Of a stretch of DNA of 64,000 nt, positions 4,830 through 55,318 are shown in pieces. Under the pieces are notes generated by a model. That model was given only the letters and a program-made list of their open reading frames with translations, did not search any database and was not told the DNA's origin. The translations under genes and the position numbers were made by a program. This DNA comes from Macrostomum lignano (Eukaryota). Each line of letters begins with the position of its first letter. Positions within the stretch are counted from its first letter, which is position 1. The stretch covers positions 62,001-126,000 of the forward strand of contig NIVC01002320.1 of the NCBI GenBank assembly GCA_002269645.1. The letters run 5' to 3'.

Positions 4830-4839
4830 CTGCGGGCCC
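4778..4839 (+). promoter_or_regulatory. Programmed -1 ribosomal frameshift signal (slippery heptamer plus H-type pseudoknot)
   Basis: G GGA AAC at 4778-4784 in the gag frame and a 6-nt spacer. Stem1 4791-4799/4813-4821, stem2 4804-4812/4831-4839. pol lies in the -1 frame. Confidence 0.85.
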
Positions 4840-28200: not shown

Positions 28201-30554
28201 TGCCGTCACGCGGCATGAGTGTTCGCTTGGAGACTCTGAGCTGACTATGGAAAACGTATGCTTTTTCATCACCTGAGTGCTTTTGAGTTGACTGTAAACC
28301 TTCTTCAGGCATCCTAAATGATCAATTTGAGAATTTTCCTACAGGTAAGAAGCCATCCCACCGAAGTGAAGTTCACGTTCCGTGCATCGAAAGAACACCA
28401 CGGCAAGGTGCTCGCCTGCAAATTCGTACAGGATGAGCGACTGATTGAGTGGAAGAGAGAGAAACTCAGCGTCTTCTGTAAGTACAGTTTTAGTTGTTTA
28501 TTGGTGTGAAAGTATGGGGGTATCTTCTACTTTGAAAAGTAACTCGTTAAGCCACACTGATGTAAATGTGCACTGCTTTTTCGCACCTGTAGACAAAGCG
28601 GATTTCGACTCTGAGGTGCAAACCTTAAAGAGAAAAGTCAGGTGGAACACGACAGTCCAGTTCAGCATCTCCTACTCTGATGTGGGAAACCCGTCCGCCA
28701 AGCACTTCTGCCGCATCGGCTCTCGGCCACTCACCGATCCTGAGGTGCGAAAATACTGATACGCATTTTTGTGTCTTCTTTGTGTAAGGGACTGGGAGTT
28801 GATATTTTAATGGAAAACATCCGGTCAAAATACATTTCAGTCGGTTTCGGCATCACAAAGATTGTCGCGCTGGCAGTTCAAGGCTCAAGTCGGAGACAAC
28901 GGTCAGAAGATCGTCTGCCAGGTGGTGCAAAATGATCGACATGGCGGCCTCGTCTTTAACCAAACAGTTGCCAGCCAGACTCTGGATGTGCTCTGTAAGG
29001 ATTTTGTTTATGTGCTGTATTCATTTCTTCGATAGAGCTATTTGTATTTATTCCAATATATTGAACCACTTTGACTGTCACAACATTGTTTTCTTGATCT
29101 CTCTATCTTTTCAGACCCAGTCAGCTACTCAGGATTTCTATCCCAGCCACCGTCGGTGACGGAGGGCGATCCCTTGGTTATTTCTTTCTTCTCAACTGGA
29201 GGAAACCCCGAGCCTCGTCATCACCGATGCTGGCTGCGGACACCTGAAGGTCGGATGGACGCAGTCGCTCTAACAGAGGCGAGGACAGGTGTGGATCTCG
29301 TGACGAACTTCAGTGTGACTTCCGTAAAGCAGATGAATGGAGGATCTGTGGTTTGTCGCGTCTCTCAGATGGGCCTCGAGGACCTGGACAAGAATTTCTC
29401 CCAGAACATTACTGTTTTCTGTGAGTTCTCTGTCGCGACTTCTCCAATTTTTATATCAATATAAAATCTAATAGAGGCTTGCAGTGCGTTTGTTTTCTGT
29501 TTGCAGTCCGATCGAAGGTGGATCTGACTGGCTCAAGGATTTCAAGATCCATTGTGCTCGTCAGCATCAATTTGACGGACGGAAACCCGACACCGCTGGT
29601 GAACTGCTCGCTGCTCTCGAGCTCTGGAACTCGACATGTGGGTTCTCAGTGTGCACAGTTGCTCCGCTTCTATTTGCATTGAGTAGCTTTAATGCAGCCG
29701 AACCCGTCATTTTAGGAGCTGTCCAGGAATGACTCGACATTGCTGAGAGTCGGACTGCATGAGATAGAAGTCGATCTGCTTTCAAGAGAGCAGCCTCAGT
29801 CAGCCAACGTCACGTGTTCTGTGAAGCAAGACTATGCGGGTTTCAAAAGCAGCAGCCTTGTCTTCTTGGCACTCAAAGCTGACGAGAGTTTCCAAGCTAG
29901 CGACCAAGAAAGTGAGCAGTTCTGTGTAGTCCAGCTTAGCTGCATTACTAAACTATTGTCTTTTAAGTTAATCGTATTGTAATGTCTTATCATATTGCTA
30001 CTATTGTATTATCGCTACAAAAACTGATCAATGCTGACCATGGGAGCCTCAGCTGGAATCAAATGTTCCAAATTCTCTGTCTGTGCGCAGTGGTTGGTGT
30101 CGCCATCGTTCTGTCCATCTCGCTGCCTGCCACAGTCTACGTCTGGAGGCGAACTGCATCGCCTCGGTTGGGAATTCAGCGGCAGCACAGAGCAGCCACA
30201 GACTGGAGATCAGCTGACGTGCCTCTGGCCCCTGTGACTGCTGCTGAGCGAGACCCCAATGTATTATTATTGCTTTTCAGTATTGCTTGCTCATTTTGCT
30301 GTTTAATCTGTGTGTGAGGCTGACAATCTGCGGCACTTTTCAGACCGTCTACTACTATGAGGAGAACCCGGCGCTTCCGGATCGGCCTCCGAGCGTTGAG
30401 GAGACGGACTTAAATGTAAGTCTATTGTCTGCATCTTTGCCAGATGCTCTCAGTGCATGCTCAGTGCAGGATTCAGTTCCGCTCATTGCAGATGGTGCAC
30501 TGTTCTGAGGAGGAGCAGACGGCTCAGGGAGCTGTCGAATTCTACGTGCAGTGA
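22269..30554 (+). pseudogene. Receptor copy 2: pseudogene, or a gene for a truncated secreted form (lectin plus 5 Ig)
   Basis: Collinear with copy 1. Lesions: +2 nt in exon 1, 34-nt deletion in exon 15 (27971/27972), CGA>TGA at 28163-28165, and TM-exon acceptor CAG>CTG at ~30035. Exons 2-14 are open. Confidence 0.75.
26603..27330 (+). repeat. 42/43-nt splice-donor repeat, ~17 units (copy 2)
   Basis: First GT at 26623, last at 27307. Confidence 0.95.
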
Positions 30555-32409: not shown

Positions 32410-34383
32410 ATCCTAGGCTTTGGAGATGTGTTCGGCGCCGGAGTGAAAGGCTCTCACCTGTTTGCGGCACAGCCCGGTGGTGCAATTGCTCTCCCAGTTG
32501 CCCACAGCGACCCTGCCTGAAGGGTAGTTTAGGCCAGAGGATGACGGTCTCTGAGGAGGCCGACCTGGTCCACTAAAAGCGGGTTGGCGGAGCCATACCA
32601 ATTGCAAGAAATAAAGAGCTTCGCAGTTAGGATCACCCAGAATCTCTCGCCCCTGATGGCGCCCAATCTTTGCCTCTTATGGCTATGGCTCACCCCTGCC
32701 TATCCAAAATTACTGCTCTCTTTGTGATGCAGCCCAAGCTTTGTGCTACGCAAAGGGGGATTCCAGTTTTTAGGTGGCCCGGGTCCAGTACCCATGGGGA
32801 ACTCAACCCACTATTCAAAAGGCAGAGCCAAATCCGTGCTTAGGCAACCCCGTTTAACAACAACAGCGGGGCCTGTGAAAGTTCAGCGGTTGGATCTACT
32901 GACCTGATACTTTATTAGTGCACTTCAGCGTTTTTCTCTTGCAAAGTGGAACTTGTGTTTGGCATCGGAATAAACTTTTTACAGATGCGAGATTCTGCAC
33001 CACCTCGTATCCTCTGCTTTAGCCGCTCGAAAACAATGTTTTATCAAGATTAGACTCTGCGAAACCAACGCATTGGCATTGAAGCAGTGTGCAGTCAGCA
33101 TAGTGCACTTCTTTGTCCTTGGAGCAACTGATTTTTCATCTTGGTTAGACGACTTGAATAGTTTATAATTCCATTCTGCAGGCTTCTCCGTTATGCCTTC
33201 ACTGATAACTTTGATAACCCTTACCAACTAAATTTCATCTAAACCTGCATCTCTGACTTGCGTGTTCACTGGCCTTCAGCTTTTGGACCTTCAACTGCTA
33301 TTTGAAGTTTAATAGAGTTCTGTCCAATTGCTGGTTGGACAAATAACCGAAGACGGAAGTTAATGACCAACACATACCAGAGACTGAAATTACTCGTAGC
33401 AGCACGGGACAGTGAATTTGAAACAGTTGGAAGATGGCTGCCCGAGGCGTCTTAAGAGCTTGCCTATTTTTAGAGACAGAACTGGACCTCTTCGTACACC
33501 ACGCGCGCTGAGAAGCCTAAATTATCGATCGTGCAACTGTTTGCGAAAGCGTTCAACGCACACAAGCGCAACAGATTAAGCGGCCCAATTGGGGAGCCAC
33601 CGCACGCAAAATTACACAGACAGACGATACGATGATTTATCTTACAAGTTATTTCAGACGCAGAATCTCGGTATAGCAGTTCCTTCTACTGGAAGTAATA
33701 AATGCGGAGTATACTTGTAGATTCTGAATGACGTGCAGAGTTTAATTTGTCACAGATAAATTTTGAGTTCGAAAATGGAAATAAAAAATCATTGGCCCGC
33801 ACAGTCGCTGCCATGTTCTGCGAGCCTCATCAAGCAACAGGCTTCACCCAAGGCACCCAAGCCAGCAGACGGGAGCATCCGGCCACCAGACTTTTGCGCT
33901 GATGGCGGGATTCAATACCGAATCACAGGCGATTACTTCTGATAAAAATGATCAATGCTAAAATAATAAAGAAACTACTATTCATATTGCAATCAGCACA
34001 ATGAACTATGGAATATGTAAAACAGTATATTATGCAATTTCCAATCGTGCAGCACACTCAAATCTCATCTCGAAATTTTAAAAACTTTTCATTCACGCGA
34101 TGGATTTCGATATCGCTCTCCGTAGCTCTATATAGTACTCATAGTAGCTATTTAACTTGATTTGTTGGTTTTGTCGAAAATGTATATAAATCACACTTGT
34201 GTTCCACCAATGAAAATGAGATTAGCGGTATCAAGACGTTAATCTTCACCAAACACGTGCAGTTTAACCCAGGAGAGAAATTTCGCAACCGAGCCAGCAG
34301 TTTTCACTCCAAAGCACAGCTGCTGCTGCTGCTGTCTCAGTTGCCAAGGAAACACTGAAAGCTGCTCTTCCTCATCAGCTGTC

Positions 34384-37300
34384 ATGGCGCAGCTCTTGGC
34401 GCTGTGCGCTCTGTGTGCAGCTCTTTGTGCTCTTGGAGGCGGTGAGTTGTCTGTCTGCCCTCAATGCCAGATATATTGTAAGCCTTCATCAGTCATGTGA
34501 AGCCCCTGCTCTCTTACAGCGGCGAGCTCCATCAAGTTCAACATCACGACAACAAACATCGCGGCTTCCTGGCAGTCGTCGGCATACAACAACAGGTGCT
34601 TCAGAGACACGGCTGTTCCTGAGCAGTGGGATTACTTTCACACAACGGACACCCCAGACTCTCATGGAAACCAGTGGCTGCTCATTAAGCTGTCCCGTGC
34701 AATCCGTGTGCAATCAGTCACTGTCTATGGCAGGGCAGCAGGTGAGTTGTCTTGTCCACTTCTGTCTCTTCCGCTTCACTTCTTTCTTACTTCTCTTCTC
34801 ACTGCAGTGCCCAGCAGAGCAGAGAACATCGAGATTCTGCTGAGTGACAGACTGCCATCGGGTCTGAATGCGAGCAATGGCAGTTGCTATGGGACTCTGT
34901 CCGGTAGCTTGAGCTCGCTCACTCAGTGCGGAGTCACCAAGGATGAGCAGACTCAGACTCACAAGGTGGCCTGCAGCTACTCTGGCTGCCCGAAAGTGGG
35001 TTTGTCTCCATTTACTCTGTTGTTGCTGAGCAAAGTGCAAAAGGTGCAAATAAATGGGTAAATCACACGAAATTTCAGGTGACTGAGTACATCTTGCTAA
35101 GGAAGAACGTTCGAAACGAATCTGATAAGTACTCGTACATGAACTTTCAAGCTCTGGAAGTCGAAGAAGGTACGACTTTAGTTGAATAAAGCTTAATTAA
35201 GTCTTCATGGGACATTTTTGACTCTAAACAGACTTTCTCTCTTTCAGCATCTCAGAATGCGCAGATTTATAGGTGTGAAGTGTCTGGCGGACACCTCAGT
35301 AACTGCAGACTCAATGCTTTGCAAACTTTGAAAAATGGCGACAGAGCTTATATGAAAGTCTGCTCACCGTGTCAGCTTCCGACAACTGATGCAGCATCTT
35401 GTCACATTGCTGCTCCAAGTGGCAATATCACACAGCTGAGAGTTGTGAGCTCACGGATGAATTTATTTCTTTTTAAATGATTTTCACAGACTATTCGACT
35501 AAATAATAGGAATAAGTGGAATGAGAAATTATGAATGGTAAAAAAATCGTGTTTTTATTCGATTTTAGCCAGTTCCTTAAATTTCTTTCACCATTTTCAG
35601 AATGGGAACCCAGACTTCTTTTTAATTGTAATTTTCATACCGACTGCGGAAAGTCAAGGAGGAAACTTCACGTGTAACTTTAACTGCTCGAACGAGTTGC
35701 CTCAGTCAGCAACTGAACCAATCGGTTTCTTTGGTATGCAGCTTTTGTGTGTACTTTTTACCTTGACAGGTGAATTCGTAAAGCAACCTTCTACTGTTCA
35801 AACTGTTGTAATCTAGGATATTGGTATTTTGCTAGCAGCCTACTATCAGGTGCAGTGCAAATGACACCCTAAAAGCAGGTTGCAGTGCAAATGACACCCT
35901 AAAAGCAGGTTGCAGTGCAAATGACACCCTAAAAGCAAGTGCAGTACAAATGACACCCTAGCAGCAGGTGCAGTACAAATGACACCCTAGCAACAGGTGC
36001 AGTACAAATGACACCCTAGCAGCAGGTGCAGTACAAATGGCAGCCTAGCAGCAGGTGCAGTACAAATGACACCCTAGCAACAGGTGCAGTACAAATGACA
36101 CCCTAGCAGCAGGTGCAGTACAAATGACACCCTAGCAGCAGGTGCAGTACAAATGACACCCTAGCAGCAGGTGCAGTACAAATGGTACCCTAGCAGCAGG
36201 TGCAGTACAAATGACACCCTAGCAGCAGGTGCAGTACAAATGGTACCCTAGAAGCAGGTGCAGTACAAATGACACCCTAGCAGCAGGTGCAGTGCAAATG
36301 ACACCCTAGCAGCAGGTGCAGTACAAATGACACCCTAGCAGCAGGTGCAGTACAAATGACACCCTAGCAGCAGGTGCAGTACAAATGGCACCCTAGCAGC
36401 AGGTGCAGTACAAATGACACCCTAGCAGCAGGTGGGTCATTCCACGAGAGGGTCCCATCATGTTTTTGAACTTTAAGCACTTGTAACTTCTGAGCCATAA
36501 TAGATAAACAAAGCTGCAAACAGCAATATGTGTCAAACTTCTAGTTCTATCTTTTTCACATAGCTGCTTATGAATTCTAAAACAACTGAAAACATAGCAG
36601 AGCGTCAACCGTCAGCATAGTTTATTCTCTGCTATGTGTTCAGTTGTTTTCCAGGTGCAGTGCAAACGGCTGAGCTCATTTTCTGTTGCAGAGGAGAAGC
36701 CCAGAAGTGTCAGCATTGAGCCCAGCAACGGGGTTCAGCTTGGATCAAGGATATTTCTGGCTTCAGGCATGGAGTTCCACTTCAGCTTCATCACAGAAGC
36801 TGCGTACCCAAGTCCCATCCATGCTTGCAGGCTGGTGAGAGCTGCTGAGCAGGAAACTACAGAAGATACTTCAGGTGTTCCACTGCATCCCGTCAGAGAG
36901 GTGAGAAAATCCTGTGCAATCTTAATACTTTCATTCCCCATTCTGATATTCTCATTAAATGCTTTTTCAGAGATCCCTCACTGACGCATCATCGAACAAA
37001 AGCCATGCAATTACCAAGATCTCAGAGTACAGACTCAACATTAGCGCACACATGCAAGCAGCTGGGCAAAAGATACAGTGCGTGTCGACTGTCGGTGAAA
37101 GCAGTGGAAAATCGGTGAAACCAATTTCACTGCCTGAGCTTGTAGGTAAGCAAAATATTGGAGGGAGAGTACTGGCAGGTGATACCTGGAATTTCTCATG
37201 TTAGATGAAGATGAGTTGTGTTGAAATGATAAAAACTGCAGTTCCAAGCAAGCCAGAGTTTCTGCTACCGCCAATCACGGATTGGAAAGACGGCCACTCC

Positions 37301-40300
37301 GTCTCAGTTGCTGTCGACTCAACAACAGACAGCCCTGTTCCAACCAGCCACCGCTGCTTGCTGGAGACTCGAGACGGCAACAGAAGTCTCACCGCTACTC
37401 AAGTGAGTCTTGCTTTGGTTTTATGCTGTCGTGAGGTTGGTTTCGAAAACAAAAACTTTGGCAAAATATTGAATGCTTTTCATCAAATGTCAAATATTTG
37501 ACAATCGTCGTGGGCTGCTGAAGTGATTCGTTCGGTGTTCTAAGCATGAGCATGTTTGAGCATGTTTACTTTCTTTGAATAAATACGAAATTTCTAAATT
37601 GCTACAAATTTCGATTTGTTCTCTTAAAACATTTCCTGTAGTAACTCTGAATCAGTCCATGAGTGTGTGTACAGGACTACTCATTCTTGCATGGTAGAGA
37701 CTTCTCAAATCGAAATTCCAGGTAACAAATAAAAGCTGTAAATTCGAGTTGGATGTTGATAGACACTGGGGAAACGCAGCCTCTCTGGTCTGTTTGGTAA
37801 ATCAATCTGGGCTGATCCAGACATGGACTCGACATCGGCTACCGAAGGTGCTCTGTGAGTCTCTGATGCCATGACTTTCTTCACAAACCTATTTCTGCAT
37901 TTGAAGATTAAGTCACGATTGCATTTTCGAATTCAGACAAGGCCGAAGGGCTGGCCATCCGTATTTCGTCTGGAGACCTGGTGAGTGATGAAGAAGCCAG
38001 CTTCTCAGTGACTGCATCTGACTCAGGATACCCAGCGGCTCTGCACCAGTGCAGAATCGAGAGCAAGAGCCTCGGAGAAGACAAGGTATGAGGCTGATGT
38101 TATTGCTCATTCAGAGTTCCCAACCAGCAGTTCAATGCTACAATTTCGGTTGACCATTCCGCAGACTGCAGAGTCAGACGGCTCAAGTCACTGGAGATTC
38201 ACGCCTCAGCGAGGGCACAACGGTGAACAAATCAGATGCGATGTGGTGCAGAAACTGAGTGGCTCTTTGATATTCAGTCAGACTGTCAACAGCTCTAATC
38301 TGGAGGTTAAATGTGAGGCTCATGCTTTAATCTGCTGCATGCTGTGATCCCGATCGATACAGTAGGGCTGCTTGCACTTCAGACAAGGCAAATGTCACGT
38401 GGCCCAGCAATATCCCTCTGAAAAAGGAAAGAGAGGCTCTGTCATTCGTTGTGCTCGCAGACGGCAACCCAGAGCCCAGCAGTCAGTGCTGGCTGCAGCT
38501 GATATCTGGTGCACAGGTGAGTCTTTGATTTGGGATGATGCTGGTTTCTGGCTCACAGGTGAGTCTTTGATTTGGGAGTGATGCTGGTTTCTGGCTCACA
38601 GGTGAGTCTTTGATTTGGGATGATGCTGGTTTTTGGCTCACAAGTGAGTCTTTGATTTGGGAGTGATGCTGGTTTCTGGCTCACAGGTGAGTCTTTGATT
38701 TGGGATGATGCTGGTTTTTGGCTCACAAGTGAGTCTTTGATTTGGGAGTGATGCTGGTTTCTGGCTCACAGGTGAGTCTTTGATTTGGGAGTGATGAGTG
38801 ATGCTGGTTTTTGGCTCACAGGTGAGTCTTTGATTTGGGATGATGCTGGTTTCTGGCTCACAGGTGAGTCTTTGATTTGGGAGTGATGCTGGTTTCTGGC
38901 TCACAGGTGAGTCTTTGATTTGGGATGATGCTGGTTTCTGGCTCACAGGTGAGTCTTTGATTTGGGAGTGATGCTGGTTTCTGGCTCACAGGTGAGTCTT
39001 TGATTTGGGATGATGCTGGTTTCTGGCTCACAGGTGAGTCTTTGATTTGGGATGATGCTGGTTTCTGGCTCACAGGTGAGTCTTTGATTTGGGAGTGATG
39101 CTGGTTTCTGGCTCACAGGTGAGTCTTTGATTTGGGATGATGCTGGTTTCTGGCTCACAGGTGAGTCTTTGATTTGGGAGTGATGCTGGTTTCTGGCTCA
39201 CAGGTGAGTCTTTGATTTGGGAGTGATGAGTGATGCTGGTCTCTGGCTCACAGGTGAGTCTTTGATTTGGGATGATGCTGGTTTCTGGCTCACAGGTGAG
39301 TCTTTGATTTGGGAGTGATGCTGGTTTCTGGCTCACAGGTGAGTCTTTGATTTGGGATGATGCTGGTTTCTGGCTCACAGGTGAGTCTTTGATTTGGGAG
39401 TGATGCTGGTATCTGGCTCACAGGTGAGTCTTTGATTTGGGAGTGATGCTGGTTTCTGGCTCACAGGTGAGTCTTTGATTTGGGATGATGCTGGTTTCTG
39501 GCTCACAGGTGAGTCTTTGATTTGGGATGATGCTGGTATCTGGCGCACAAGTGAGTCTTTGATTTGGGATGATGCTGGTATCTGGCGCACAAGTGAGTCT
39601 TTGATTTGGGAGTGATGCTGGTATCTGGCTCACAAGTGAGTCTTTGATTTGGGATGATGCTGGTATCTGGCTCACAGGTGAGTCTTTGATTTGGGAGTGA
39701 TGCTGGTTTCTGGCTCACAGGTGAGTCTTTGATTTGGGAGTGATGCTGGTCTCTGGCTCACAGGTGAGTCTTTGATTTAGGATGATGCTGGTTTCTGGCT
39801 CACAGGTGAGTCTTTGATTTAGGATGATGTTGCAGTCTTGGTGTTTCATAATAATCGCTATTTTCGTTCCAGGTAGACCTGCATAAGCTGAAGCATTCTA
39901 TGTTTGAAAGCACCTTCAACGTCACTGTTGATAGGTCAATGAACCGAGCCAATTTGAGCTGTGTTTTGACTCAACCTGGACTTCCATCTTCAACGGAGCA
40001 GAGGTTCACCCAATTGATCACAGTATTTTGTAAGTTTACAGAATCCATTTTCATAGGGTTCACAATGAGGTATACGATTTGTAAATGAGTGCATACTTTT
40101 TGAGCCAATGGAAACATTTCCTGTCGCTTCGGAGGCTCTGACTTGAAGCACTTCTTAAATCATAGACTGAAAAATAATATCGACCCAACCATCTCACAGA
40201 TCAGCCTCAGCCTCCACTCACCATCGGCTTGGCTCAGACTGTCTACGAAGGCACCGACGTCACCTTCACGGTGCGGTCGGGCGCTGGAAACCCCACTGTC

Positions 40301-42723
40301 AACCACAGATGCCACGTGTACAACGGAACAATTGTGAGCGCAATATTTGCTCATCAAATCACCTGACTTGTAGCTTTGATTTAACACAGAGTTGATCATT
40401 CCAGGAAGTTCAAAACAGCATGAAAATCGAATCGGAGTACTTGACAATGGTGAACTATGCACCCAACAGTCATGACACATTTGTGAGCTGCACGGCCGAG
40501 CAGATGCACCGCTCTGAAGTTGTGTTCACCAGCAGCATCAGAAGGAACATCACCGTCAATTGTGAGAAGTCAAATGCCATTTTATTAGCATGCAGCCTGC
40601 CATTTACTTAAAAACCGGAGTATCCACTTTAACTTCAGACCTTGCGCACAACTCCATGGACATCAGTCCGAGAGAAGGAGTTCTTGCTGGAGATCGAGTC
40701 GAAGTGACACTCAAATCTTATGGTGGCCGGCCTGCCGTCACGCGGCATGAGTGTTCGCTTGGAGACTCTGAGCTGACTATGGAAAACGTATGCTTTTTCA
40801 TCACCTGAGTGCTTTTGAATTGACTGTAAACCTTCTTCAGGCATCCTAAATGATCAATTTGGGAATTTTTCTACAGGTAACAAGGCGTCCCACCGAAGTG
40901 AAGTTCACGTTCCGTGCATCGGAAGAGCACGACGGCAAGGTGCTCGCCTGCAAATTCGTCCAGGATGAGCGACTGATTGAGTGGAAGAGAGAGAAACTCA
41001 GCGTCTTCTGTAAGTACAGTTTGAGTTGTTTATTGGTGTGAAAGTATGGGGGTATCTTCTACTTTGAAAAGTAACTCGTTAAGCCACACATTACTGTTTT
41101 CTGTGAGTTCTCTGTCGCGACTTCTCCAACTTTTATATCAATATAAAATCTAATAGAGGCTTGCAGTGCGTTCGTTTTTCCGTTTGCAGTCCGATCGGAG
41201 GTGGATCTGACCGGCTTAAGGATTTCAGGATCCATTGTGCTCGTCAGCATCAATGTGACGGACGGAAACCCGACACCGCTGGTGAACTGCTCGCTGCTCT
41301 CAAGCTCTGGAACTCGACATGTGGGTTCTCAGTGTGCACAGTTGCTCCGCTTCTATTTGCATTGAGTAGCTTTAATGCAGCTGAGCCGGTCTTTTTAGGA
41401 GCTGTCCAGGAATGACTCGACATTGCTGAAAGTCGGACTGCATAAGATGAAAGTCGATCTGTTTTCAAGAGAGCAGTCTAAGTCAGCCAACGTCACGTGT
41501 TCTGTAAAGCAAGACTATGCGGGTTTCAAAAACAGCAGCCTTGTCTTCTTGGCACTCAAAGCTGACGAGAGTTTTCAAGCTAGCGACCAAGAAAGTGAGC
41601 CGATCTCAGCTGCTCGTATTGGTTTTTTCAGCTAGCATGACTTTTTCTGATATTAAAATGTATAAGTGCATTATTTCACCGATTTCTCGTATTAAATAGT
41701 GCGTTGTCTCACACCGCCAAAAGCAGGAGGGTCGGTAGGCGGCGTTGTCGGCGCCACATTCGGAACGCTGTTGGCCTTGGGACTGGTCGGGGCCGCAATC
41801 CTGCTGCTGCTGAGAGCTCGGCGACTCAGGGCAACTGACCGACCCGACAATCGCAGCGGCTACTCCAACGGTAGAAGAGGAGCCAGTGGAGCTGCTCGAA
41901 CGGAACGAGAAAAGCAACAGCCTAGAAAAAAGCAGACCGAAGATCCCACGGAGACTGAGCTGCAGTTCATGGACAAGCACTATCTGTATCCGGTGAGATG
42001 ACCATCATGGGACTTTAATTAACAGATTCCTGATCCCACTGGAACAATTTGTATCCTTGAGCAAGACACTTAACTCTGCATTGCTTCAGTCACCCAGCTG
42101 TAAAATGAGTGCCAGCATTAGCTGGGGTAATTGAGGGGTGTATGACGACCCCACAGTCCTTGGGCTGAACAGCCGTACGCAGCCTTCAGATGCGCCGCGC
42201 AATAGCTCGGCGCAATAGGTTGCACGTCTGGCCCCCTGGGTCAGGTGTAATAAATTATTATTATTATTATACATCTGCAGCATCTCCCTAGCAATATCTG
42301 CAGCCTCTCTCTAGCAACATCTGCAGCATCTCCCCAGCAACATCTGCAGCCTCTGCCTAGCAACATCTGCAGCATCTCCCTAGAAGCATCTGCAGCATCT
42401 TCTCAGCAACATCTGCAGCATCTCCCTAGCAACATCTGCAGCCTCTCTCTAGCAACATCTGCAGCATCTCCCTAGCAACATCTGTAGCATCTCCCTAGCG
42501 AAATCTGCAACGTACCTATTAGCTGTAACCAACACCTACAGTATTCAAAAACTTGATACCATTGCAGAAGCCCCGCATGGAGTACGCTACGGTTGTCAAG
42601 GGCGAACTAATGGAAGAGACCAGCCTAGCCGACAGCACAGAGACAATCTACCTGACCATCGTGGGCTGCACACAGCCTGAGGATGACAAGGCGCCCACAA
42701 TGCAGAAATCTAAGGTCAACTGA
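34384..42723 (+). CDS. Receptor copy 3: signal peptide, lectin-like domain, 8 Ig-like domains, different TM and ITIM-like/ITSM tail (~1140 aa)
   Basis: Exons 1-17, 21 and 22 are open and collinear with copy 1; exons 18-20 are deleted. TM exon 41700-41992 (GGVVGATFGTLLALGLVGAAILLLL-RARR) ends at phase-0 donor CCG|GTGAGA. Last exon 42568-42723 follows CATTGCAG and encodes KPRMEYATVV...TETIYLTIV...KSKVN*. Confidence 0.8.
38500..39830 (+). repeat. 42/43-nt splice-donor repeat, ~31 units (copy 3)
   Basis: First GT at 38517, last at 39806. Confidence 0.95.
42277..42510. repeat. 23-nt minisatellite in the last intron of copy 3
   Basis: Unit AGCAACATCTGCAGCATCTCCCT. Confidence 0.9.
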
Positions 42724-43323
42724 ACCTTCTCGAAATTGAAAAGCGACTGTTTTACAGTTTCAGCTTTTTAATTATGAATATTACAAGGGTTAGACTGTAG
42801 AGGTATGTCTAATTCTTGGCAACAATACAATTTACTGTTTGACAAATCGCTTAACAAATTCTGTTTGTACTTTTGCTTAGACTTTAAAGCGTTACAATAA
42901 TAGCCCCGTTATGAAGCTTTATACCTGTCTCGTATCCAAGACTTTCATCAGCAAAATTCTGCATGAATAAATTAATTAACTCTGCGAGAATGCAGTAAAT
43001 ATACGAGCGTAGATGTAGGAGGGTACATCATATACTAATTCAGAATGTACTAAATGTACTATATATAAGTCTAGCTTATTTATTTAGCTTATGTAGTTTC
43101 CATGTACATGAAAGTTTTGACTCTGAAGTAAGTTTGTGAAATTGCAATTTCAATTTACTTTAGAATCTACGAGTATTCTTTTTATTCCTGTAAATTTTGT
43201 TCCTCGTTATCAACTGTACAATATGTAATTTCCCTGTGTGCTTATTAATTCGTATAATATAGTTTCAAGATTTTCTTATACAGAAAAAATCCCTCAAATT
43301 TGAAGTTTAATAGCCGGCGGTGT

Positions 43324-44587: not shown

Positions 44588-47182
44588 CTATAATGAAGCA
44601 TTTCCTGAGCAGCGACTCAAAAGCCGCTTGCTGCTTGGCCTCTTCGGCCGGGTCGTTCGCAGGCTTGATTGCCTCGGCTGCCGCTGACTGCGGACCACCG
44701 ACACCCGGCGGCGGCGTTGGCGGCCGCGGCCCGTTGACGCCGACGCTGCCGGGGACGCGCGACAGCGCCTCGGCGACAGGAGAGCGGCGGTGAAGAAAGC
44801 CGGAGGCAGCAGGCTCTCCATCAGAGTCTGGACACCCCGAGCATCGCCAGCGACTGTCAATATTTGAGAGCGAGCGTTGATTGAGCTTGAATCATTTTTA
44901 ATATTTTTGGAATGATTTTTTGTGTCTTAGAAAAGTATTAAGTATGGTTACTATCGATTTTTAAGAATTTTATTTCGGGGACTACTCAAAAATGGTTTGA
45001 GCACTATTTTTACCAGGTAGTCTCTGGGGTTTGAAATGCATTTAAGCTTAAAGGATCTTAAACGCTTTGATATAAAAGATTTCTTTACATCCATATACTA
45101 AAAATGGTCTATCGGTAGGTAGGTAGGTAGGTATCTATCTAGGTATGTGATCGATTTTAGCAAAATTTTAACTATTTTCAAAACGTTTTAAATGATTTAG
45201 TAGGTGTATCGAACATTTAAAGATTGTTGTATCGAATATTTAGAAAGTTTTTTATTAATTTTATAAACTCGCAAAATTAAATCACGAAAACTTAAATTTA
45301 GGTTAATTTTTCATTAAATTTACATACAAATTTACAGTTGTTGTCCATATTTGAGCCTCAATCTATAATTATAAACAGCAAGCAGACCTTAGTTTAAATT
45401 TAATATATATATATTATTTTAAAATTACACATCATAGCAAATAGTACTGGCGTTTTTTACACGGTAACTACAATAAATACTGATTGTATATACTGTAGTA
45501 TTTATAGCAATGGTCCAGCTACATTTGAAGGACCACAAATCCATTCTTTTGAAGGCGTATGAGTTGCATTCGCCATTCTCGTTCGTTTCTTTTGAAGCAA
45601 CCTTCGTACTTTACATTATTAAAAGTACGAGCTAATAACAAACGCTAAGCTATAATTGCACATAAATTACGCCTAAACTCCATCTACCGACTTTAGTTAG
45701 TTTAAATTTAAATTCATTATGAAAATAAGAGATACAGGAACAAATATTGAGTAGTCCCTGATGAGGTAACTATTTACAAGGTATTTATTTCAGTTACCGT
45801 GACACTCAAACTCGGAATACCAAAAATATATAGTTACGTAAGAGCCCTCCCTGGGCTGATGCGCAGGGCTTTAATTTGCCCAAACTTATCAACGTGAACA
45901 TGAACGTATTTATTTCAGTTACCGTGTAAATAACGACTGCCAGTAGCTTTAGCTACCTTCCGGTTTTACCATAAATTAGTCCTATTAATTCACATTGTTG
46001 CTGACTGAGACATTTACCTATCTGCCAAGCTGTGATTAAATTAGTCACATGTTTATGACCGGCATAAATTGCTGTTAAATTTAGGATGCATCTGTAACTA
46101 TCTAAAGCTGTGCAGTCATTTACAGTCTAAATGTACACTAAAAATAATATACATTTTCTGCTTACATGGAAACATTCGCGTCAGCAGCTCCCGATGCAGC
46201 TGGTCAATGTACGCAGCCGCCTGTTGCACTACTTTCACCTGTAAGGTGGTAGAGAGAGAGGGAGAGAGAAGTTTAGCGTGAAAGAAAATTATGTAGCCAT
46301 CTTTACTAGACTACTATCAATAGACAGTTTAGAGATTATTAATTGCATTACTTGTATATAATTACAAAGGATAGTAACTTCTTAGCAGTCCACTGAGTCC
46401 CATTCGGGTGTCTAAAGTGGGTACTGAAGTAGTTGCTCGTGGCCCCATGAGGTAACTGGGTTATCTAGAGTGGGTAGTTGCTCGTGGCCCCATGAGGTAA
46501 CTGGGTTATCTAGAGTGGGTAGTTGCTCGCGGCCCCATGAGGTATGGAGGTATCTGGGTATCTAGAGTGGGTAGTTGCTCGCGGCATTATGAGGTATGGA
46601 GGTATCTGGGTATCTAGAGTGGGTAGTTGCTCGCGGACCCATGAGGTATCTGGGTATCTAGAGTGGGTAGTTGCTCGTGGCCCCATGAGGTACCTTGGTA
46701 TCTAGAGTTAGGTAGTTGCTCGCGGCCCTATGAGGTACCTTGGTATCTAGAGTGGGTAGTTGCTCGCGGCCCTATGAGGTACCTGGGTATCTAGAGTTGG
46801 GTAGTTGCTCGCGGCCCCATGAGGTATCTGGGTATCTAGAGTTGGTCGTGGGAATATACTGACGGCCCATTGAAGTATCTGGGCATCTAAATCTTATGGC
46901 GCTAGGTGAAGCATTAACACACAAAAGTAATTATTTTGGCCCAGGTAAGCTGGTAGGAAAACGGTTGTTGGCAACATAGATAATCTTGTAGAATCCAGCT
47001 AAATAGCTTGAATATAACGGTACACGTCTTCCACAGCCCAGTGGAACTCTCACCTGTCCTGTCTCCGATGCCAGCGGCCCGTCAGCCGAGACTTCGGCGG
47101 CACCAGGCAGCACCCGGAGCAGCCGACGGCACTCGCGCACCTCCTCCAGTTGGCGAGACCGAAGCTGCAGCTGCTGCGTCAT
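44588..47182 (-). CDS. Three-exon HLH protein, ~155 aa, Id/emc-like or orphan HLH with no obvious basic region
   Basis: Exons 47182-47054 (phase 0), 46238-46166 (phase 1) and 44853-44588, all GT-AG. Helix1 LEEVRECRRLLRVLP, loop, helix2 KVVQQAAAYIDQLHREL; Arg-rich C-terminal tail. Confidence 0.7.
46425..46845. repeat. ~44-nt minisatellite in HLH intron 1
   Basis: Unit GGGTAGTTGCTCGCGGCCCCATGAGGTATCTGGGTATCTAGAGT, with longer variants. Confidence 0.92.
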
Positions 47183-47264: not shown

Positions 47265-47304
47265 TATTTATAGCTATACTCAAGCGGGGCTCACGTTCAA
47301 TTGG
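47265..47304 (-). promoter_or_regulatory. TATA box (47265-47272) and CCAAT box (47300-47304) of the HLH gene
   Basis: Minus-strand TATAAATA lies ~83 nt upstream of the ATG, with CCAAT ~30 nt further upstream. Confidence 0.6.
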
Positions 47305-47637
47305 TTGCTGCGGGTTTCTGTGCGCCCGACAGCTGGGGGGGGGGGGCTTGAGTCCGAATTTTCGCTCGCTTCTAGGCTGGGGTGGAGAGGGGAGCCGTCA
47401 CCTGCCGGGCCCCGGGGACCCCCACCTCCACGTTCCTCGGTTCCCATGGCCTCCACCCCTAAGCCAGACCATGATATCGGAGAGGGGAGGCGGTAACTGT
47501 GTGGGGGTGGGACACCTACCTATGGAATTGCCTCATTCTCATTGGGCAGGGAGCCCGCAAGCTAGAAGTCTGGAGAGAGGGGGGGGCATCGCAAACCCGA
47601 AAAAGCTTCGAAAGTGCTAGCAACGCGCCCAACGCTT

Positions 47638-48056
47638 TGGATTTCGGAGTTATGTTATTTCGGGTTTTTTATGGGAAGTGATGTCGGAGTTATGTTATTT
47701 CGGGTTTTTGATGGGAGCGATTTCGGAGTTGTGATATTTCGGGTTTTTGATGGGAGCGATTTCGGAGTTGTGATATTTCGGGTTTTTGATGGGAGCGATT
47801 TCGGAGTTGTGATATTTCGGGTTTTTGATGGGAGCGATTTCAGAGTTGTGATATTTCGGGTTTTTGATGGGAGCGATTTCGGAGTTGTGATATTTCGGGT
47901 TTTTGATGGGAGCGATTTCGGAGTTGTGATATTTCGGGTTTTTGATGGGAGCGATTTCGGAGTTGTGATATTTCGGGTTTTTGATGGGAGCGATTTCGGA
48001 GTTGTGATATTTCGGGTTTTTGATGGGAGCGATTTCGGAGTTTTGATATTTCGGGT
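47638..48056. repeat. 39-nt minisatellite
   Basis: Unit GATTTCGGAGTTGTGATATTTCGGGTTTTTGATGGGAGC. Confidence 0.95.
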
Positions 48057-48894
48057 TGCACCCGAACAGACACACACATTGCAGCTAAAAAACAGAATCG
48101 GAATTCCTAAACTCAAAAATAAAAATTTTTGACAGTTGGAAAATTTATGTATCTTAATTTTAAATACCGGATGCACATCTAGCTCCTATTAGCTATGAAA
48201 TTACTTTCAGACCTTTCTAATCCGAAGTTTAAGTTTTCTTTGACTGTGACAGAAATTTGCTGAAGAAATTAGATAAAGGAAGGGAGTAAACAGTCCAGAT
48301 ATTCTCTCTGTCGGTGGGCGGTGGCATTAGGAGTAAGGAGAGTAGGGGAGTAGGACGACCTCGGGTCTATTTGAGACAAGGGGGTGGGTGTCGCCACGGG
48401 CCTCCCCACATGCTCACCTGGCTCACTGCGCACGTGGTACGGATACCGAGGCCTCTCCCACGCTTGTGCAATCTGAGTGTCTGGCAGCTGCTTGGCCTCA
48501 GAGCTGGGGGGGGGGGCGCCCCGAGGCCCCAGCAACACGCGGCCATAGCGGGTGAAGAAGCGCGCCATCTGCTGCCGCAAACGGCTGGGACTCTCAGCTT
48601 TCTGCCCAGCCCCTGCCATGCGCTGCGTTCTCAGTTGTTAACCGCCTGGCGTTTAACTTTCCCAGCACAGCTTGACGACTCCACAGTAACAGCCTGGCAA
48701 CAAGCAGTTTATGGCGCCTTCTGGCGTGCAAAAGCAGATAATGGGCTCAAAAATGCTGGAGTTCTTATGCGCCGGCATGAGAAGCCTAGATGGAGAGAAA
48801 TAAAAGTTCGTCTGGCACTTTCAATCAGGACACAAGGAATTGAATCGCCAATGCTGGACTCGCTGGGCCATTAGATTCTCCCAATGAGCTCTAA

Positions 48895-49245: not shown

Positions 49246-49584
49246 AGTCCTGTCATAGCAATTCGTTAATTAGTTTCGAATTGATTCATTTCAAGCATGG
49301 ATAAGAGCCGCCACTAAGACACGAAGTAGAGAAAATTAAAAAAAGACTCCAACTAAGCCCCGTGCCCGGGGGCTGCATCGAAATTGAGCTATTTATTGGG
49401 GGGGACTCGCTTTTAGATAAAGCGTTGCGCAATCGGCCCCTATTAGACTGACTCCATCTGCCCCATCAAATAGGCACGAGTCTGCCGCCACTGCCCCCCT
49501 ACTTGAGGATTGACTCGGTTGCCAACCATCTTGCCGTCATGGATACGTGAGTGGGGAGTTTGAATAGATGCATTGGAGGGCACC

Positions 49585-50530
49585 GAGTCACTGTGAATAC
49601 TGTGACTGTGTGATGCATAGTGACTGAGGCTGGCACTGACTCACTGTGAATACTGTGAGTGTGTGATGCATAGTGACTGAGGCTGGCACTGACTCACTGT
49701 GAATACCATGACTGTGTGGTTTATAGTGACTGAGGCTGACACTGACTCACTGTGAATAGTGTGACTGTGTGATGTATAGTGACTGAGGCTGGCACTGACT
49801 CACTGTGAATACTGACTGTGTGGTTTATAGTGACTGAGGCTGACACTGAGTCACTGTGAATAGTGACTGTGTGGTTTATAGTGACTGAGGCTGACACTGA
49901 GTCACTGTGAATACTGACTGTGTGGTTTATAGTGACTGAGGCTGACACTGAGTCACTGTGAATACTGACTGTGTGGTTTATAGTGACTGAGGCTGACACT
50001 GAGTCACTGTGAATACTGACTGTGTGGTTTATAGTGACTGAGGCTGACACTGAGTCACTGTGAATACTGACTGTGTGGTTTATAGTGACTGAGGCTGACA
50101 CTGAGTCACTGTGAATACTGACTGTGTGGTTTATAGTGACTGAGGCTGACACTGAGTCACTGTGAATACTGACTGTGTGGTTTATAGTGACTGAGGCTGA
50201 CACTGAGTCACTGTGAATACTGACTGTGTGGTTTATAGTGACTGAGGCTGACACTGAGTCACTGTGAATACTGACTGTGTGGTTTATAGTGACTGAGGCT
50301 GACACTGAGTCACTGTGAATACTGACTGTGTGGTTTATAGTGACTGAGGCTGGCACTGACTCACTGTGAATACCTGTGTGATGTATAGTGACTGAGGCTG
50401 GCACTGACTCACTGTGAATACCTGTGTGATGTATAGTGACTGAGGCTGGCACTGACCCACTGTGAATACCGTGACTGTGTGATGTATAGTGACTGAGGCT
50501 GGCACTGAGTCACTGTGAATAGTGTGACTG
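49585..50530. repeat. 51-nt minisatellite with an internal hairpin
   Basis: Unit AGTGACTGAGGCTGACACTGAGTCACTGTGAATACTGACTGTGTGGTTTAT; AGTGACT/AGTCACT stem. Confidence 0.95.
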
Positions 50531-51334
50531 ATTGTGATACCATGAATACCAACTTGTCAGTGCCTTAATAAAGGTTTTGACAGGAGGGAATTGTAAAAAT
50601 GCCTGAAGTATCTTACTACTGATTTAACTTTAGTAGTATTGAAGGGATGTTTTTAAGCTTTTCGACGATATTTCTTTGCACTGTATATTCCTTAATTAAT
50701 AATTCATAACTGGCAAGGGGCTGTCATGCAGACAGTGTTATGACGTCGGTGTCCATATGGACCAAATCGAATTTGTCAGATTAGAACGAACCTATTTGTT
50801 GAATTGCTGTTTAAAAAAGCAGAGATGGAAAGCGGCTCTGTAATATTAATGAGAGTAGGATAGAGGGGGACTGGGGGGGGGGTACGAACTGTGAGGCCTC
50901 AATATGAGAGGCAGGTGAGGGATATGGGAGGAGTTCACCGCAGGCCCGTGAGGACAGGAGTTTTAACATGCACTCAGGCAGTCGCCCGGGCTTCCACCTC
51001 CCCTTTCACTTTCCGGGTTAACGGGGGGGGGGAAGTCAGGGGTGAGTCATTAGGACGGGCGAATGGAGAGGTTGGAGAGCAAGTCTCCCCTTTGCTCTCG
51101 CGTGTTCGCGTGGCTTAGATACATGTAGAATAAAGCAAACCGGATTATCTCTGCTGAGCTCCTTTGCCAATGGATTTTGCATCCACCCCTAATTCTATTC
51201 CTGTCTGCAAAATTAATCAAAGGAAACCAAAATAAGCCTCTCCTCTCCTTCTGGCTAATGCTTTTTGCTTGTCAGGAGTTCGGACGCTCTATTTAATCTG
51301 AGTAGCTCTTTGGCTTACTTTTGACTGACATAAA

Positions 51335-52242
<908 letters not shown>

Positions 52243-53106
52243 TGCCATACAATAGGATAGTTTTTTCTTGACTAAACGACGCAGTAAAAACTGAATGTAT
52301 TTGAAATGAAAACGAAGTGGACACAAAGCCCTCTTCAGCTGTGTATTTATGACATTAAATGACATTAAATGGATGTGAATTGTGTACCAAAAGTGCATCA
52401 CTTGCTATCACATGATGATTTGCAATTGGCTTACTAGAGAGCCGCATCGCGCGGACACAAATAAACTATTTATTGATATTTAAAACACGGACCAGGTCGT
52501 GTAAACATGAAATAATAATAATGTAGTAAACTAAAAATCCTGTGATGAAAGATTAGACTAGCTGGTAGTACAGTTCTGTGCTACGGCTGGGATAAACGGA
52601 TGGCAGATATAGAATAGAAAAAGTGATAATTGCACCTGCGGGCGCCCTTGACTTCTCATACTGTAGGTGTTAAGTCGAAAATTTCGTGAGCCAGCGGCCT
52701 CGCCAAGTGGCTGGAGGGCCCTGGGCAGACTGCTGCTCAAAGAGGTCGAAATACGGTTGGACAGAAACTGGAGACGAAAGTTGGACCATGATGACGACTG
52801 GCCGGCTGTCAAGGGCGGTGACGGTGCACAAGGACTTCTAACAATTCTTCTAAACCTAAAATCTAAACTAAAATGCCTCCTAGCCAAGGCTCTTGGGGCT
52901 TGCTTCTAGGAGGACTGCAAAATTAACTGCAGAGCAGATTGTCGGGCAAACAGCAAAACAAAATAATGGCTAAAACGAAACTAGAAAACTAAAAAAATAG
53001 CTAGAAAAAGCTGAACCAAACAAGAGAAGGATGCTGATTTAACTTCATCAGCAGCATAGCAACTTGAATTTTACCTGGATGAATTGATTTAAATTGATGT
53101 TGAATC

Positions 53107-54365
53107 CAGACTGTCTGTTCTGTGGTTTACAGACTGTCTGATCTGTGGTTTACAGACTGTCTGTTCTGTGGTTTACAGACTGTCTGCTCTGTGGTTTACA
53201 GGCTTTCTGATCTGTGGTTTACAGACTGTCTGATCTGTGGTTTACAGACTGTCTGTTCTGTGATTTACAGACTGTCTGATCTGTGGTTTACAGACTGTCT
53301 AATCTGTGATTTACAGACTGTCTGTTCTGTGGTTTACAGACTGTCTGTTCTGTGGTTTACAGACTGTCTGATCTGTGATTTACAGACTGTCTGATCTGTG
53401 GTTTACAGACTGTCTGTTCTGTGGTTTACAGACTGTCTGATCTGTGATTTACAGACTGTCTGCTCTGTGGTTTACAGACTGTCTGATCTGTGATTTACAG
53501 ACTGTCTGATCTGTGGTTTACAGACTGTCTGATCTGTGATTTACAGACTGTCTGATCTGTGGTTTACAGACTGTCTGATCTGTGGTTTCCAGACTGTCTG
53601 ATCTGTGGTTTACAGACTGTCTGATCTGTGGTTTACAGACTGTCTGTTCTGTGGTTTACAGACTGTCTGATCTGTGATTTACAGACTGTCTGCTCTGTGG
53701 TTTACAGACTGTCTGATCTGTGATTTACAGACTGTCTGATCTGTGGTTTACAGACTGTCTGATCTGTGATTTACAGACTGTCTGATCTGTGGTTTACAGA
53801 CTGTCTGATCTGTGGTTTACAGACTGTCTGCTCTGTGGTTTACAGACTGTCTGATCTGTGGTTTACAGACTGTCTGATCTGTGATTTACAGACTGTCTGA
53901 TCTGTGGTTTACAGACTGTCTGATCTGTGGTTTACAGACTGTCTGATCTGTGGTTTACAGACTGTCTGCTCTGTGGTTTACAGACTGTCTGATCTGTGGT
54001 TTACAGACTGTCTGATCTGTGGTTTACAGACTGTCTGATCTGTGGTTTCCAGACTGTCTGATCTGTGGTTTCCAGACTGTCTGTTCTGTGGTTTACAGAC
54101 TGTCTGATCTGTGATTTACAGACTGTCTGATCTGTGATTTACAGACTGTCTGCTCTGTGGTTTACAGACTGTCTGATCTGTGGTTTACAGACTGTCTGCT
54201 CTGTGGTTTACAGACTGTCTGATCTGTGGTTTACAGACTGTCTGCTCTGTGGTTTACAGACTGTCTGATCTGTGGTTTACAGACTGTCTGCTCTGTGGTT
54301 TACAGACTGTCTGATCTGTGGTTTCCAGACTGTCTACTCTGTGGTTTCCAGACTGTCTGTTCTGG
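53107..54365. repeat. 23-nt minisatellite
   Basis: Unit CTGTGGTTTACAGACTGTCTGAT. Confidence 0.96.
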
Positions 54366-54879
54366 TCAAGAAGACTCAGACACCAACATTACCCTAGCCT
54401 GGTGGGCATGGGAGAATTCTTATCCTGGTAAAACTCGTGTCAATTTGCTGCTTCGATGCAGTTTACAATAAGACAGACTTTGCTAAACAGTATCTAAATA
54501 AAATATAATAGAATATATTGCATAGCAACTATTTACAGCAAATAAGCTCGACAGTAAAGCATTAACACAGACTTTTCAACTATAGGGAAACAAGAAACGT
54601 TAACAAAACACAATTGCATTGTCAAAATAGCAATTGAAAAGACCAATAGATTAAAAAAGTGACATTCAGTTACCGCGACTCCAGCAAGATGGCAAACGGT
54701 TGCTAAGGACTCTGGGATGCTCAAAACTACAGCTAGATGACCAGGAAGAGTTCGGGGGACAGTTGCTCGCTTTGTTCAGAGGACAAGCGGTGAGGTAGCC
54801 ATCTGGAATTGATTAGCTGGGGATGTTAATATTCAATCGATAATAAACTTGTTGGTTACAGGCCTCAGCTGCTCAAATA

Positions 54880-55318
54880 GTCTAATGATCCCCTCAGGTA
54901 TTCTAATGATTCCCTCGGGTATTCTAATGATTCCCTCAGGTATTCTAATGATTCCCTCGGGTATTCTAATGATTCCCTCAGGTATTCTAATGATTCCCTC
55001 GGGTATTCTAATGATCCCCTCAGGTATTCTAATGATCCCCTCAGGTATTCTAATGATTCCCTCGGGTATTATAATGATCCCCTCAGGTATTCTAATGATC
55101 CCCTCAGGTATTCTAATGATTCCCTCGGGTATTCTAATGATCCCCTCAGGTATTCTAATGATCCCCTCAGGTATTCTAATGATTCCCTCGGGTATTCTAA
55201 TGATCCCCTCAGGTATTCTAATGATCCCCTCAGGTATTCTAATGATTCCCTCGGGTATTCTAATGATCCCCTCAGAATGATCCCCTCAGGTATTCTAATG
55301 ATTCCCTCGGGTATTCTA
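54880..55318. repeat. 21-nt minisatellite
   Basis: Unit TTCTAATGATTCCCTCGGGTA. Confidence 0.96.

Follow-up and report, generated by a model that had tools for sequence, protein, structure and literature searches.

An Ig-like gene array of Macrostomum lignano in which one copy carries a distinct transmembrane and tail module with ITIM-like and ITSM motifs

PECAM-1 (CD31) and PD-1 each dock the tandem SH2 domains of SHP-2 through an inhibitory motif and a switch motif, both of the immunoreceptor tyrosine-based type (ITIM and ITSM, respectively), of their own. Here we describe a gene of the flatworm Macrostomum lignano whose predicted product resembles these receptors. The gene, designated copy 3, lies in a 64,000-nucleotide (nt) stretch of contig NIVC01002320.1 (assembly GCA_002269645.1, positions 62,001 to 126,000 of the forward strand), which we refer to as the window and whose own numbering is used throughout; self-comparison of the window revealed three tandem gene copies, at ~8.5 to 17.5 kb (copy 1), ~21.8 to 31.0 kb (copy 2), and ~33.5 to 41.6 kb (copy 3). 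The likeness to PECAM-1 and PD-1 lies in a type I immunoglobulin (Ig) superfamily organization, an uncharged transmembrane (TM) segment, and two tyrosine motifs 22 to 25 residues apart, of which the distal one is a perfect TxYxx(V/I). The proximal motif of copy 3, MEYATV, resembles the PD-1 ITSM, TEYATI. Unlike PECAM-1 and PD-1, to which it has no sequence homology, copy 3 has M at position −2 of the proximal motif, its docking of SH2 domains is a prediction from motifs, and its ectodomain combines a possibly lectin-like N terminus with Ig-like repeats that lack the canonical B-strand Cys and C-strand Trp.

The arrangement of the locus also recalls the vertebrate paired receptor clusters (KIR, LILR, SIRP, and FcR-like; PMC2413239), in which tandem paralogues have near-identical ectodomains but non-homologous TM/tail modules, module boundaries fall in introns, gene conversion or unequal crossover is in evidence, and pseudogenes lie inside the array. 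The Macrostomum family is unrelated to these in sequence and differs from them in several respects: the copy 1 partner has neither a charged TM residue nor the adaptor logic that goes with an activating motif of the immunoreceptor tyrosine-based type (ITAM), the copy 1 tail has tyrosines of its own, and copy 3 has two Ig domains fewer. Similar ectodomains joined to non-homologous tails, as expected of paired receptors, were found here, whereas an activating partner with a charged TM segment was not.

Among invertebrates, lineage-specific, clustered, and rapidly diversifying receptors with ITIM- or ITSM-like motifs include fester and uncle fester of Botryllus (PMC12582321, PMC11507803), an inhibitory leucine-rich repeat receptor of amphioxus (PMC8211107), and an NCAM1-like ITIM receptor of the oyster, an Ig superfamily protein reported from another lophotrochozoan (PMC11841013). 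Those receptors come with expression data and, in part, binding data, whereas copy 3 is known here from sequence alone. A literature search for ITIM receptors in Macrostomum or flatworms found nothing relevant.

Gene structure and the transmembrane and tail module of copy 3

In a three-way alignment, copies 1, 2, and 3 are identical through ...CAAGAAA|GTGAGC, where the vertical bar separates the last base of exon 20 (41594) from the first base of intron 20 (41595). Exon 20, which encodes the second half of the last Ig-like domain, is 93 to 95% identical to its counterparts in copy 1 (16406-16601) and copy 2 (29716-29911). Copy 3 diverges from 41601, although the BLAST match runs on to 41606 (29923 in copy 2 and 16613 in copy 1). 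An initial annotation of this DNA had placed the loss of identity 6 nt past the start of the intron that follows the last Ig exon, and the alignment bears this out, with BLAST extending the similarity to 12 nt. Beyond that point, 41607-43200 resembles nothing in the rest of the window besides its own 23-bp minisatellite. In copy 1, the TM segment and tail are encoded on three exons (16781-16917, which carries the TM segment, 17025-17096, and 17173-17235), with the products MVAVASFLSLPATVYVWRR...PLVP, TVYYYEENPALPDRPPSVEETDSN, and MANCSEEEQTAQGAIEFYVQ*, in agreement with the UniRef M. lignano models P0001 to P0003. The copy 1 TM segment (VAVASFLSLPATVYVW) has no charged residues, and its tail has the tyrosine stretches TVYYYEENP and EFYVQ and no ITAM. 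Comparison of the copy 3 tail with the copy 1/2 tail revealed no similarity at either the DNA or the protein level. Both types of TM exon begin in phase 1 with TG, completing an ATG codon from the last base of exon 20, and the phase-1 joins of all the exons concerned preserve the reading frame across the module switch. As judged by these comparisons, the TM/cytoplasmic module that copy 3 encodes on two exons shares no homology with the one that its neighbours encode on three. In-situ divergence of the tail was ruled out, since ~95% identity in the adjoining intron and exon sequences gives way, in the tail, to no similarity at all in DNA or protein.

Searches for relatives of the module were negative. 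With tblastn of both tails against the 64-kb window, the copy 3 module had no second copy, the sequence downstream of copies 1 and 2 contained no relic of the copy 3 tail, and a relic of the copy-1/2-type tail was likewise not found downstream of copy 3; a weak tail match on the minus strand at 47289-47519 was rejected as low-complexity sequence. An exhaustive phmmer search of 1.84 billion representatives with the copy 3 TM segment and tail returned 0 matches at an E value of ≤0.001. In a word-indexed search, a query that also included the half-exon of the last Ig domain matched only M. lignano proteins of the copy-1/2 type.

We built the copy 3 gene model by mapping UniRef A0A1I8H8M2 (P0004) and applying splice-site and phase logic. 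This M. lignano entry matches copy 3 exons 1 to 15 almost exactly, exon by exon, and ends at exon 15; it is a truncated public model of copy 3. The full coding sequence (CDS) is an uninterrupted 3,504 nt on 22 exons with GT-AG introns throughout and no internal stops. The order in the protein is a signal peptide, a possibly lectin-like N-terminal domain, a Cys-rich module, seven Ig-like domains, a TM helix, and a 111-residue cytoplasmic tail; hydropathy analysis gave hydrophobic peaks at residues 4 to 22 and 1031 to 1056 only. Exon 21 encodes an extracellular stalk (MRCLTPPKAGGS), the TM helix (VGGVVGATFGTLLALGLVGAAILLLL), RARRLR, and the membrane-proximal tail to ...HYLYP. The TM helix is uncharged and rich in Gly and small-residue spacing, the stop-transfer sequence RARRLR follows it, and the positive charges lie on the inside. 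The GTGAGA donor of exon 21 also serves copy 3 exons 7 and 16; if intron 21 were retained, the protein would terminate in ...HYLYPVR*. The initial annotation had proposed a different phase-1 TM exon followed by a phase-0 tail exon across a 41992^42568 junction, and all of its coordinates and phases proved correct in the sequence. The possibility that the TM segment and tail belong to a separate gene was ruled out, as exon 21 is in phase 1, lies 105 nt past exon 20, and lacks any in-frame ATG upstream of the TM segment.

To score coding signal, we used a codon-usage log-likelihood trained on copy 3 exons 1 to 20 versus introns and took same-size pieces of copy 1 exons and sampled introns as comparison windows. 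For exon 22, the score was +25.1 in the proposed frame versus −7.1 and −5.0 in the alternative frames, compared to 21.6 ± 7.4 for exon windows and −28.5 ± 9.8 for intron windows. Exon 21 scored 64.7, and none of the sampled intron windows scored as high as exon 21 or exon 22. The GC content at third codon positions of exon 22 is 0.71, and GC drops to 0.31 immediately past the stop. Exons 21 and 22 thus show coding-type codon usage in the proposed frame only.

Comparison of copies 1 and 3 across their 20 shared exons gave 138 differing sites, with a dS of 0.050, a dN of 0.046, and a ratio of 0.91, and coding divergence was about equal to intron divergence (4.8%). Nevertheless, both frames are open despite ~5% divergence: neutral substitution left a frame free of stops in only 0.7% of simulated trials (P = 0.007), and at the intron rate ~15 indels would be expected in the CDS, compared to the 2 observed, both in frame. 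Open frames combined with fast amino acid change indicate that the frames have been kept open, a pattern typical of recognition families. Copy 3 is intact and, to judge from its sequence, a probably functional family member, and we consider its gene structure, together with the difference in TM/tail modules, to be very likely correct.

History of the module and reading of its tyrosine motifs

The tract of high identity that copy 3 shares with copies 1 and 2 has limits on both its 5' and its 3' side (Table 1). In the upstream flank (33508-34191), copy 3 is only 75 to 82% identical to copies 1 and 2, whereas in 33937-34191, the stretch comparable in all three, the identity between copies 1 and 2 is 99%. 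Informative sites form a mosaic along the gene body. We infer that copy 3 is an older or outlying paralogue of the array. Gene conversion or unequal crossover with copies 1 and 2 would have homogenised its body over a tract that begins ~190 nt before the ATG and runs to the last Ig exon, halting where homology ended. Because such a tract would stop at the end of homology, the difference in tails would predate the similarity of the ectodomains rather than being a recent gain. We regard this history, as read from the pattern of identities, as the reasonably likely one. The initial annotation had the tail gained by exon shuffling, which the data do not support: no donor family was found by either word-indexed protein searches or exhaustive phmmer, and the tract of ~95% identity is also bounded on its 5' side, near 34190.

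The tail contains two tyrosine motifs, MEYATV (Y1122) and TIYLTI (Y1144), with 22 residues between the tyrosines. The consensus sequences are (S/I/V/L)xYxx(I/V/L) for the ITIM and TxYxx(V/I) for the ITSM (PMC8631942), and the earlier description of TIYLTI as a perfect ITSM and of MEYATV as deviating at −2, with tyrosines at this spacing, was confirmed from the positions and the consensus. The N-terminal SH2 domain of SHP2 prefers hydrophobic residues, including M, at −2, A or L at +1, and hydrophobic residues at +1 and +3 (PMC8007070), so that the M at −2 of MEYATV falls within its hydrophobic preference at that position. When the tail was shuffled with its composition preserved, TxYxx[VI] arose in ~3% of the shuffles, and TxYxx[VI] accompanied by a second Yxx[IVL] at a distance of 15 to 35 residues arose in 0.2 to 0.3%; the motif pair exceeds chance for one tail. 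We hypothesize that ligand-driven clustering would lead a Src-type kinase to phosphorylate Y1122 and Y1144 and that the two sites, given their spacing, would jointly recruit a phosphatase of the Csw/SHP-2 type through its tandem SH2 domains, or some other SH2 protein. The signalling output of copy 3 would then differ from that of copy 1, with its TVYYYEENP/EFYVQ tail. Docking of an SH2 phosphatase by the copy 3 tail is a tentative proposal, one that we consider possible but would not bet on. The label "inhibitory" is not established for this receptor, as it would be drawn from two short motifs that match YxxΦ endocytic signals equally well. Taken together, gene structure, homogenisation history, and SH2 docking form what we consider the best overall explanation, and the chances that it holds in all its parts are evenly balanced.

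Several points weigh against that combined explanation. Both copy 3 junctions, 41594^41700 and 41992^42568, and with them the use of exons 21 and 22, are known here from genomic sequence alone; UniRef models of M. lignano carry the copy-1/2-type tail only, and the copy 3 TM/tail has no homologue at an E value of ≤10 among 5.8 billion proteins. A dN/dS near 1 is also compatible with relaxed constraint, and the direction of the tail change is not determinable from one locus. MEYATV falls outside the strict ITIM consensus, differing at −2 only, the motif pair was picked post hoc, after the sequence had been read, and both YATV and YLTI satisfy YxxΦ, which does not discriminate sorting from SH2 docking. 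One alternative is that exons 21 and 22 go unused or that copy 3 is decaying, with transcripts that end after exon 20 or exon 21 and motifs that have no function; read-through past exon 20 would give ...DQESEPISAARIGFFS*, a secreted form. The end of the public model at exon 15, the dN/dS of 0.91, and the frameshifts in adjacent copy 2 would suit such decay, as would the genomic nature of the evidence for exon use. However, the 1,167-codon frame has stayed intact at ~5% divergence (P of ~0.007; ~15 indels expected), exon 21 encodes a textbook TM segment with a stop-transfer sequence in the correct phase, and exon 22 has exon-like codon usage in a single frame with a sharp drop in GC past its stop, so that we consider decay very unlikely. 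Another alternative keeps the exons but makes the module recent: by exon shuffling or deletion-fusion, a copy-2-like duplicate would have lost its TM/tail exons in a deletion or crossover from intron to intron and acquired in their place the 3' exons of a gene farther downstream that is unrelated to it. Homology is indeed lost sharply inside an intron, the phase-1 ends are compatible, and a second intron-to-intron difference exists at 41089/41090, where two Ig-like domains are missing. The 5' flank argues otherwise, since its 75 to 82% identity, against 99% between copies 1 and 2, indicates that the whole locus is not a recent duplicate; moreover, the downstream sequence retains no remnant of a copy-1/2-type tail, and the searches identified neither a donor gene nor a donor family. 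We consider a recent fusion of this kind rather unlikely.

Other alternatives accept the exons and concern what the tail does. The motifs could be ordinary YxxΦ sorting signals that bind the mu2 subunit of AP-2, in which case the tail would alter endocytosis or trafficking without involving SH2 phosphatases. YATV and YLTI match Yxx[LIVMF], two such motifs are common (5 to 16% of tail shuffles), and the SH2 docking proposal is itself drawn from sequence motifs. In contrast, tandem-SH2 phosphatases favour the M and T found at −2, the small or hydrophobic character of the +1 positions, and a spacing of 22 residues, none of which AP-2 requires, and sorting and SH2 docking can coexist; a role in sorting only seems to us doubtful. 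Alternatively, copy 3 may be an adhesion or recognition molecule like PECAM-1, nectin, nephrin, or SYG-2, for which SHP-2-type docking would be positive or scaffolding and the term "inhibitory immune receptor" would be wrong. Its long ectodomain of C2/I-set-like repeats, which best matches SYG-2, ICAM-1, nectin-like proteins, NCAM2, and titin, fits this idea, and neither type of TM segment is charged, nor is an ITAM partner evident. What is seen here, tandemly amplified genes with a dN/dS near 1 next to a pseudogenised copy, is, however, more typical of recognition or immune-type families. The present evidence does not separate an adhesion role from an immune role, and we consider an adhesion receptor with positive or scaffolding output unlikely.

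Ectodomain, neighbouring copies, and other elements of the window

The ectodomain repeat is ~95 amino acids (aa) long and is encoded by exon pairs of phases 1-0 and 0-1. An alignment of 13 repeat sequences showed that one Pro and two Cys residues (GNPxxxHxC ... C..Q) are invariant, with the Cys residues 36 to 39 positions apart. A profile of the repeat matched PDB sequences of CD276 (5e-6), SYG-2 (1e-4), titin (4e-4), and ICAM-1 (9e-4), and also nectin-4 and CD22, whereas Pfam returned only subthreshold matches for the full copy 3 protein (the best, C2-set_2, had 19.6 bits versus a cutoff of 21). AlphaFold2 (AF2) models were made for domains that occur within database proteins or are encoded by a single exon. 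The model of one repeat had a pLDDT of 86.8, and its Foldseek neighbours were nearly all Ig domains (CD147 Ig0, neuroplastin, ICAM-1, titin, NCAM2, and CD33), including all of the top ones. The canonical B-F disulfide with a C-strand Trp is absent, and no repeat has a Cys in the earlier (B-strand) segment. On the strength of the profile and the model, the repeats are Ig-like beta-sandwiches, but unusual ones. In our reading of the alignment, the first invariant Cys would occupy the usual position of the C-strand Trp and the second would lie on strand F, and a noncanonical disulfide between the two is possible (e.g., in 40200-40561). The N-terminal domain (exons 2 to 4 of copy 3, 34520-35169) gave weak matches to Pfam F5_F8_type_C_2 (E value, 0.11) and to FBP32 in the PDB (E value, 0.28); its AF2 model was of low confidence (pLDDT, 58.6), with Foldseek matches mostly to CBM32, fucose-binding, and F5/8 type C domains at TM-scores of 0.3 to 0.46. 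These are weak hints of an F-type lectin/discoidin (galactose-binding-like) fold, which would make the domain a glycan-binding head on an Ig stalk. The family as a whole is one of Macrostomum-specific, fast-evolving type I membrane glycoproteins that have unusual Ig-like repeats behind an N-terminal domain that is possibly lectin-like.

The initial annotation had copy 3 sharing the ectodomain of its neighbours, and this holds for the 20 shared exons, across which copies 1 and 3 are 90% identical in amino acid sequence, but not for the ectodomain in full. Three exons encoding two Ig-like domains in copy 1 (15259-16106) and copy 2 (28557-29406) are absent from copy 3, where the corresponding junction, at 41089/41090, lies within intron 18. 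Intron-to-intron changes at the level of domains happen repeatedly in this Macrostomum family. One additional Ig-like domain of copy 1 (15816-16118) lies on a single unsplit exon, whereas every other repeat is split over two exons. Copy 2 has two lesions, a +2-nt insertion immediately 3' of the ATG (22269-22328) and a 34-nt deletion in exon 16 (27907-28029), and is probably a pseudogene in this assembly, unless the lesions are assembly errors. A further UniRef model of M. lignano, A0A1I8J1C7 (P0008), is a chimera that begins with one tandem copy's tail and continues into the copy that follows; automatic annotation fused neighbouring family members in this entry.

Table 1. Coordinates of the three gene copies and of features of copy 3 in the window
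Feature	Position	Strand	Description
Copy 1	9401-17235	+	Intact; 25 exons, 1,308 aa; two Ig-like domains more than copy 3; TM/tail on three exons
Copy 2	22269-30551	+	Copy 1 architecture with two frameshifting lesions; end of tail exon B placed by tblastn only
Copy 3	34384-42723	+	Start codon to stop; 22 exons, 1,167 aa
High-identity tract	34192-41606	+	Copy 3 92 to 99% identical to copies 1/2, introns and exons alike; bounded at both ends (sliding identities)
Exon 20	41399-41594	+	Second half of last Ig-like domain; phase-1 end (...CAA GAA A|GT)
Intron 20	41595-41699	+	105 nt; unrelated to the 179-nt intron of copy 1 at the same place
Breakpoint interval	41595-41606	+	Common donor GTGAGC, then 6 nt with 4 matches, then similarity lost
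Exon 21	41700-41992	+	Phase 1 to phase 0; AG acceptor, GTGAGA donor; 98 in-frame codons
TM helix	41735-41812	+	VGGVVGATFGTLLALGLVGAAILLLL; 26 residues; Kyte-Doolittle maximum of 2.35 at residue 1038
Intron 21	41993-42567	+	575 nt; GTGAGA...CAG
23-bp minisatellite	42271-42509	+	10.4 units, in intron 21; CTGCAG acceptor-like site in every unit
Exon 22	42568-42723	+	Phase 0; AG acceptor; encodes KPRMEYATVVKGELMEETSLADSTETIYLTIVGCTQPEDDKAPTMQKSKVN; TGA at 42721-42723
MEYATV (Y1122)	42577-42594	+	ITIM-like, M at −2; also fits YxxΦ
TIYLTI (Y1144)	42643-42660	+	Residues 1142 to 1147; fits ITSM TxYxx(V/I); also fits YxxΦ
AATAAA	42966-42971	+	Sole canonical poly(A) signal in 880 nt scanned past the stop; begins 243 nt after the stop

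The density of minisatellites is very high in introns and between genes, and several differ in length among the three copies. A 42-bp minisatellite that begins within exon 13, at its 3' end, occurs in copy 3 (38498-39829), copy 2 (26604-27334), and copy 1 (13891-14022); its unit repeats the exon 13 donor CACAG|GTGAGT, creating tandem consensus 5' splice sites (~31 in copy 3, ~17 in copy 2, and ~3 in copy 1) that could affect splice-site choice. Minisatellites were also recorded at 35847-36434, 42271-42509, 46429-46889, 47640-48057, 49579-50527, 51323-52260, 53105-54364, 54872-55320, and 55780-56231. Just upstream of copy 1, the plus strand at 4020-8097 carries the coding region of a Ty3/gypsy-type retrotransposon over three open reading frames (ORFs), which encode, in order, a zinc-knuckle gag; an aspartyl protease and the start of the reverse transcriptase; and reverse transcriptase, RNase H, and integrase. 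A 552-aa ORF on the minus strand (56331-57989), located in a 65% GC block, matched no Pfam family.

Meaning for receptor evolution in flatworms

Our results comprise a well-supported observation on gene structure and, as read from the sequence, a reasonable guess at function. In its furthest-reaching form, that guess would make the locus a convergent flatworm counterpart of the vertebrate paired natural killer and myeloid receptors, a lineage-specific array of receptors with Ig-like repeats and a possibly lectin-like N terminus in which the fast-diversifying ectodomains of neighbours are kept alike by gene conversion, while ITIM-like plus ITSM tails and YYYEEN tails signal in opposite or distinct ways. 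We consider this quite improbable as it stands; such a family would perhaps serve in recognition of self and non-self, of mates, or of microbes. We know of no paired-type cluster of receptors with tyrosine motifs in a flatworm, and expression of the copy 3 tail, together with its docking of an SH2 phosphatase, would make this array the first of its kind known to us. M. lignano is a tractable model for regeneration and stem cell biology in which transgenesis is available. If the proposal is true, the array would provide a data point on independent origins of the "same ectodomain, different tail" design and would also inform the genomic route by which it arises, through intron-bounded modules, compatible phases, and gene conversion.

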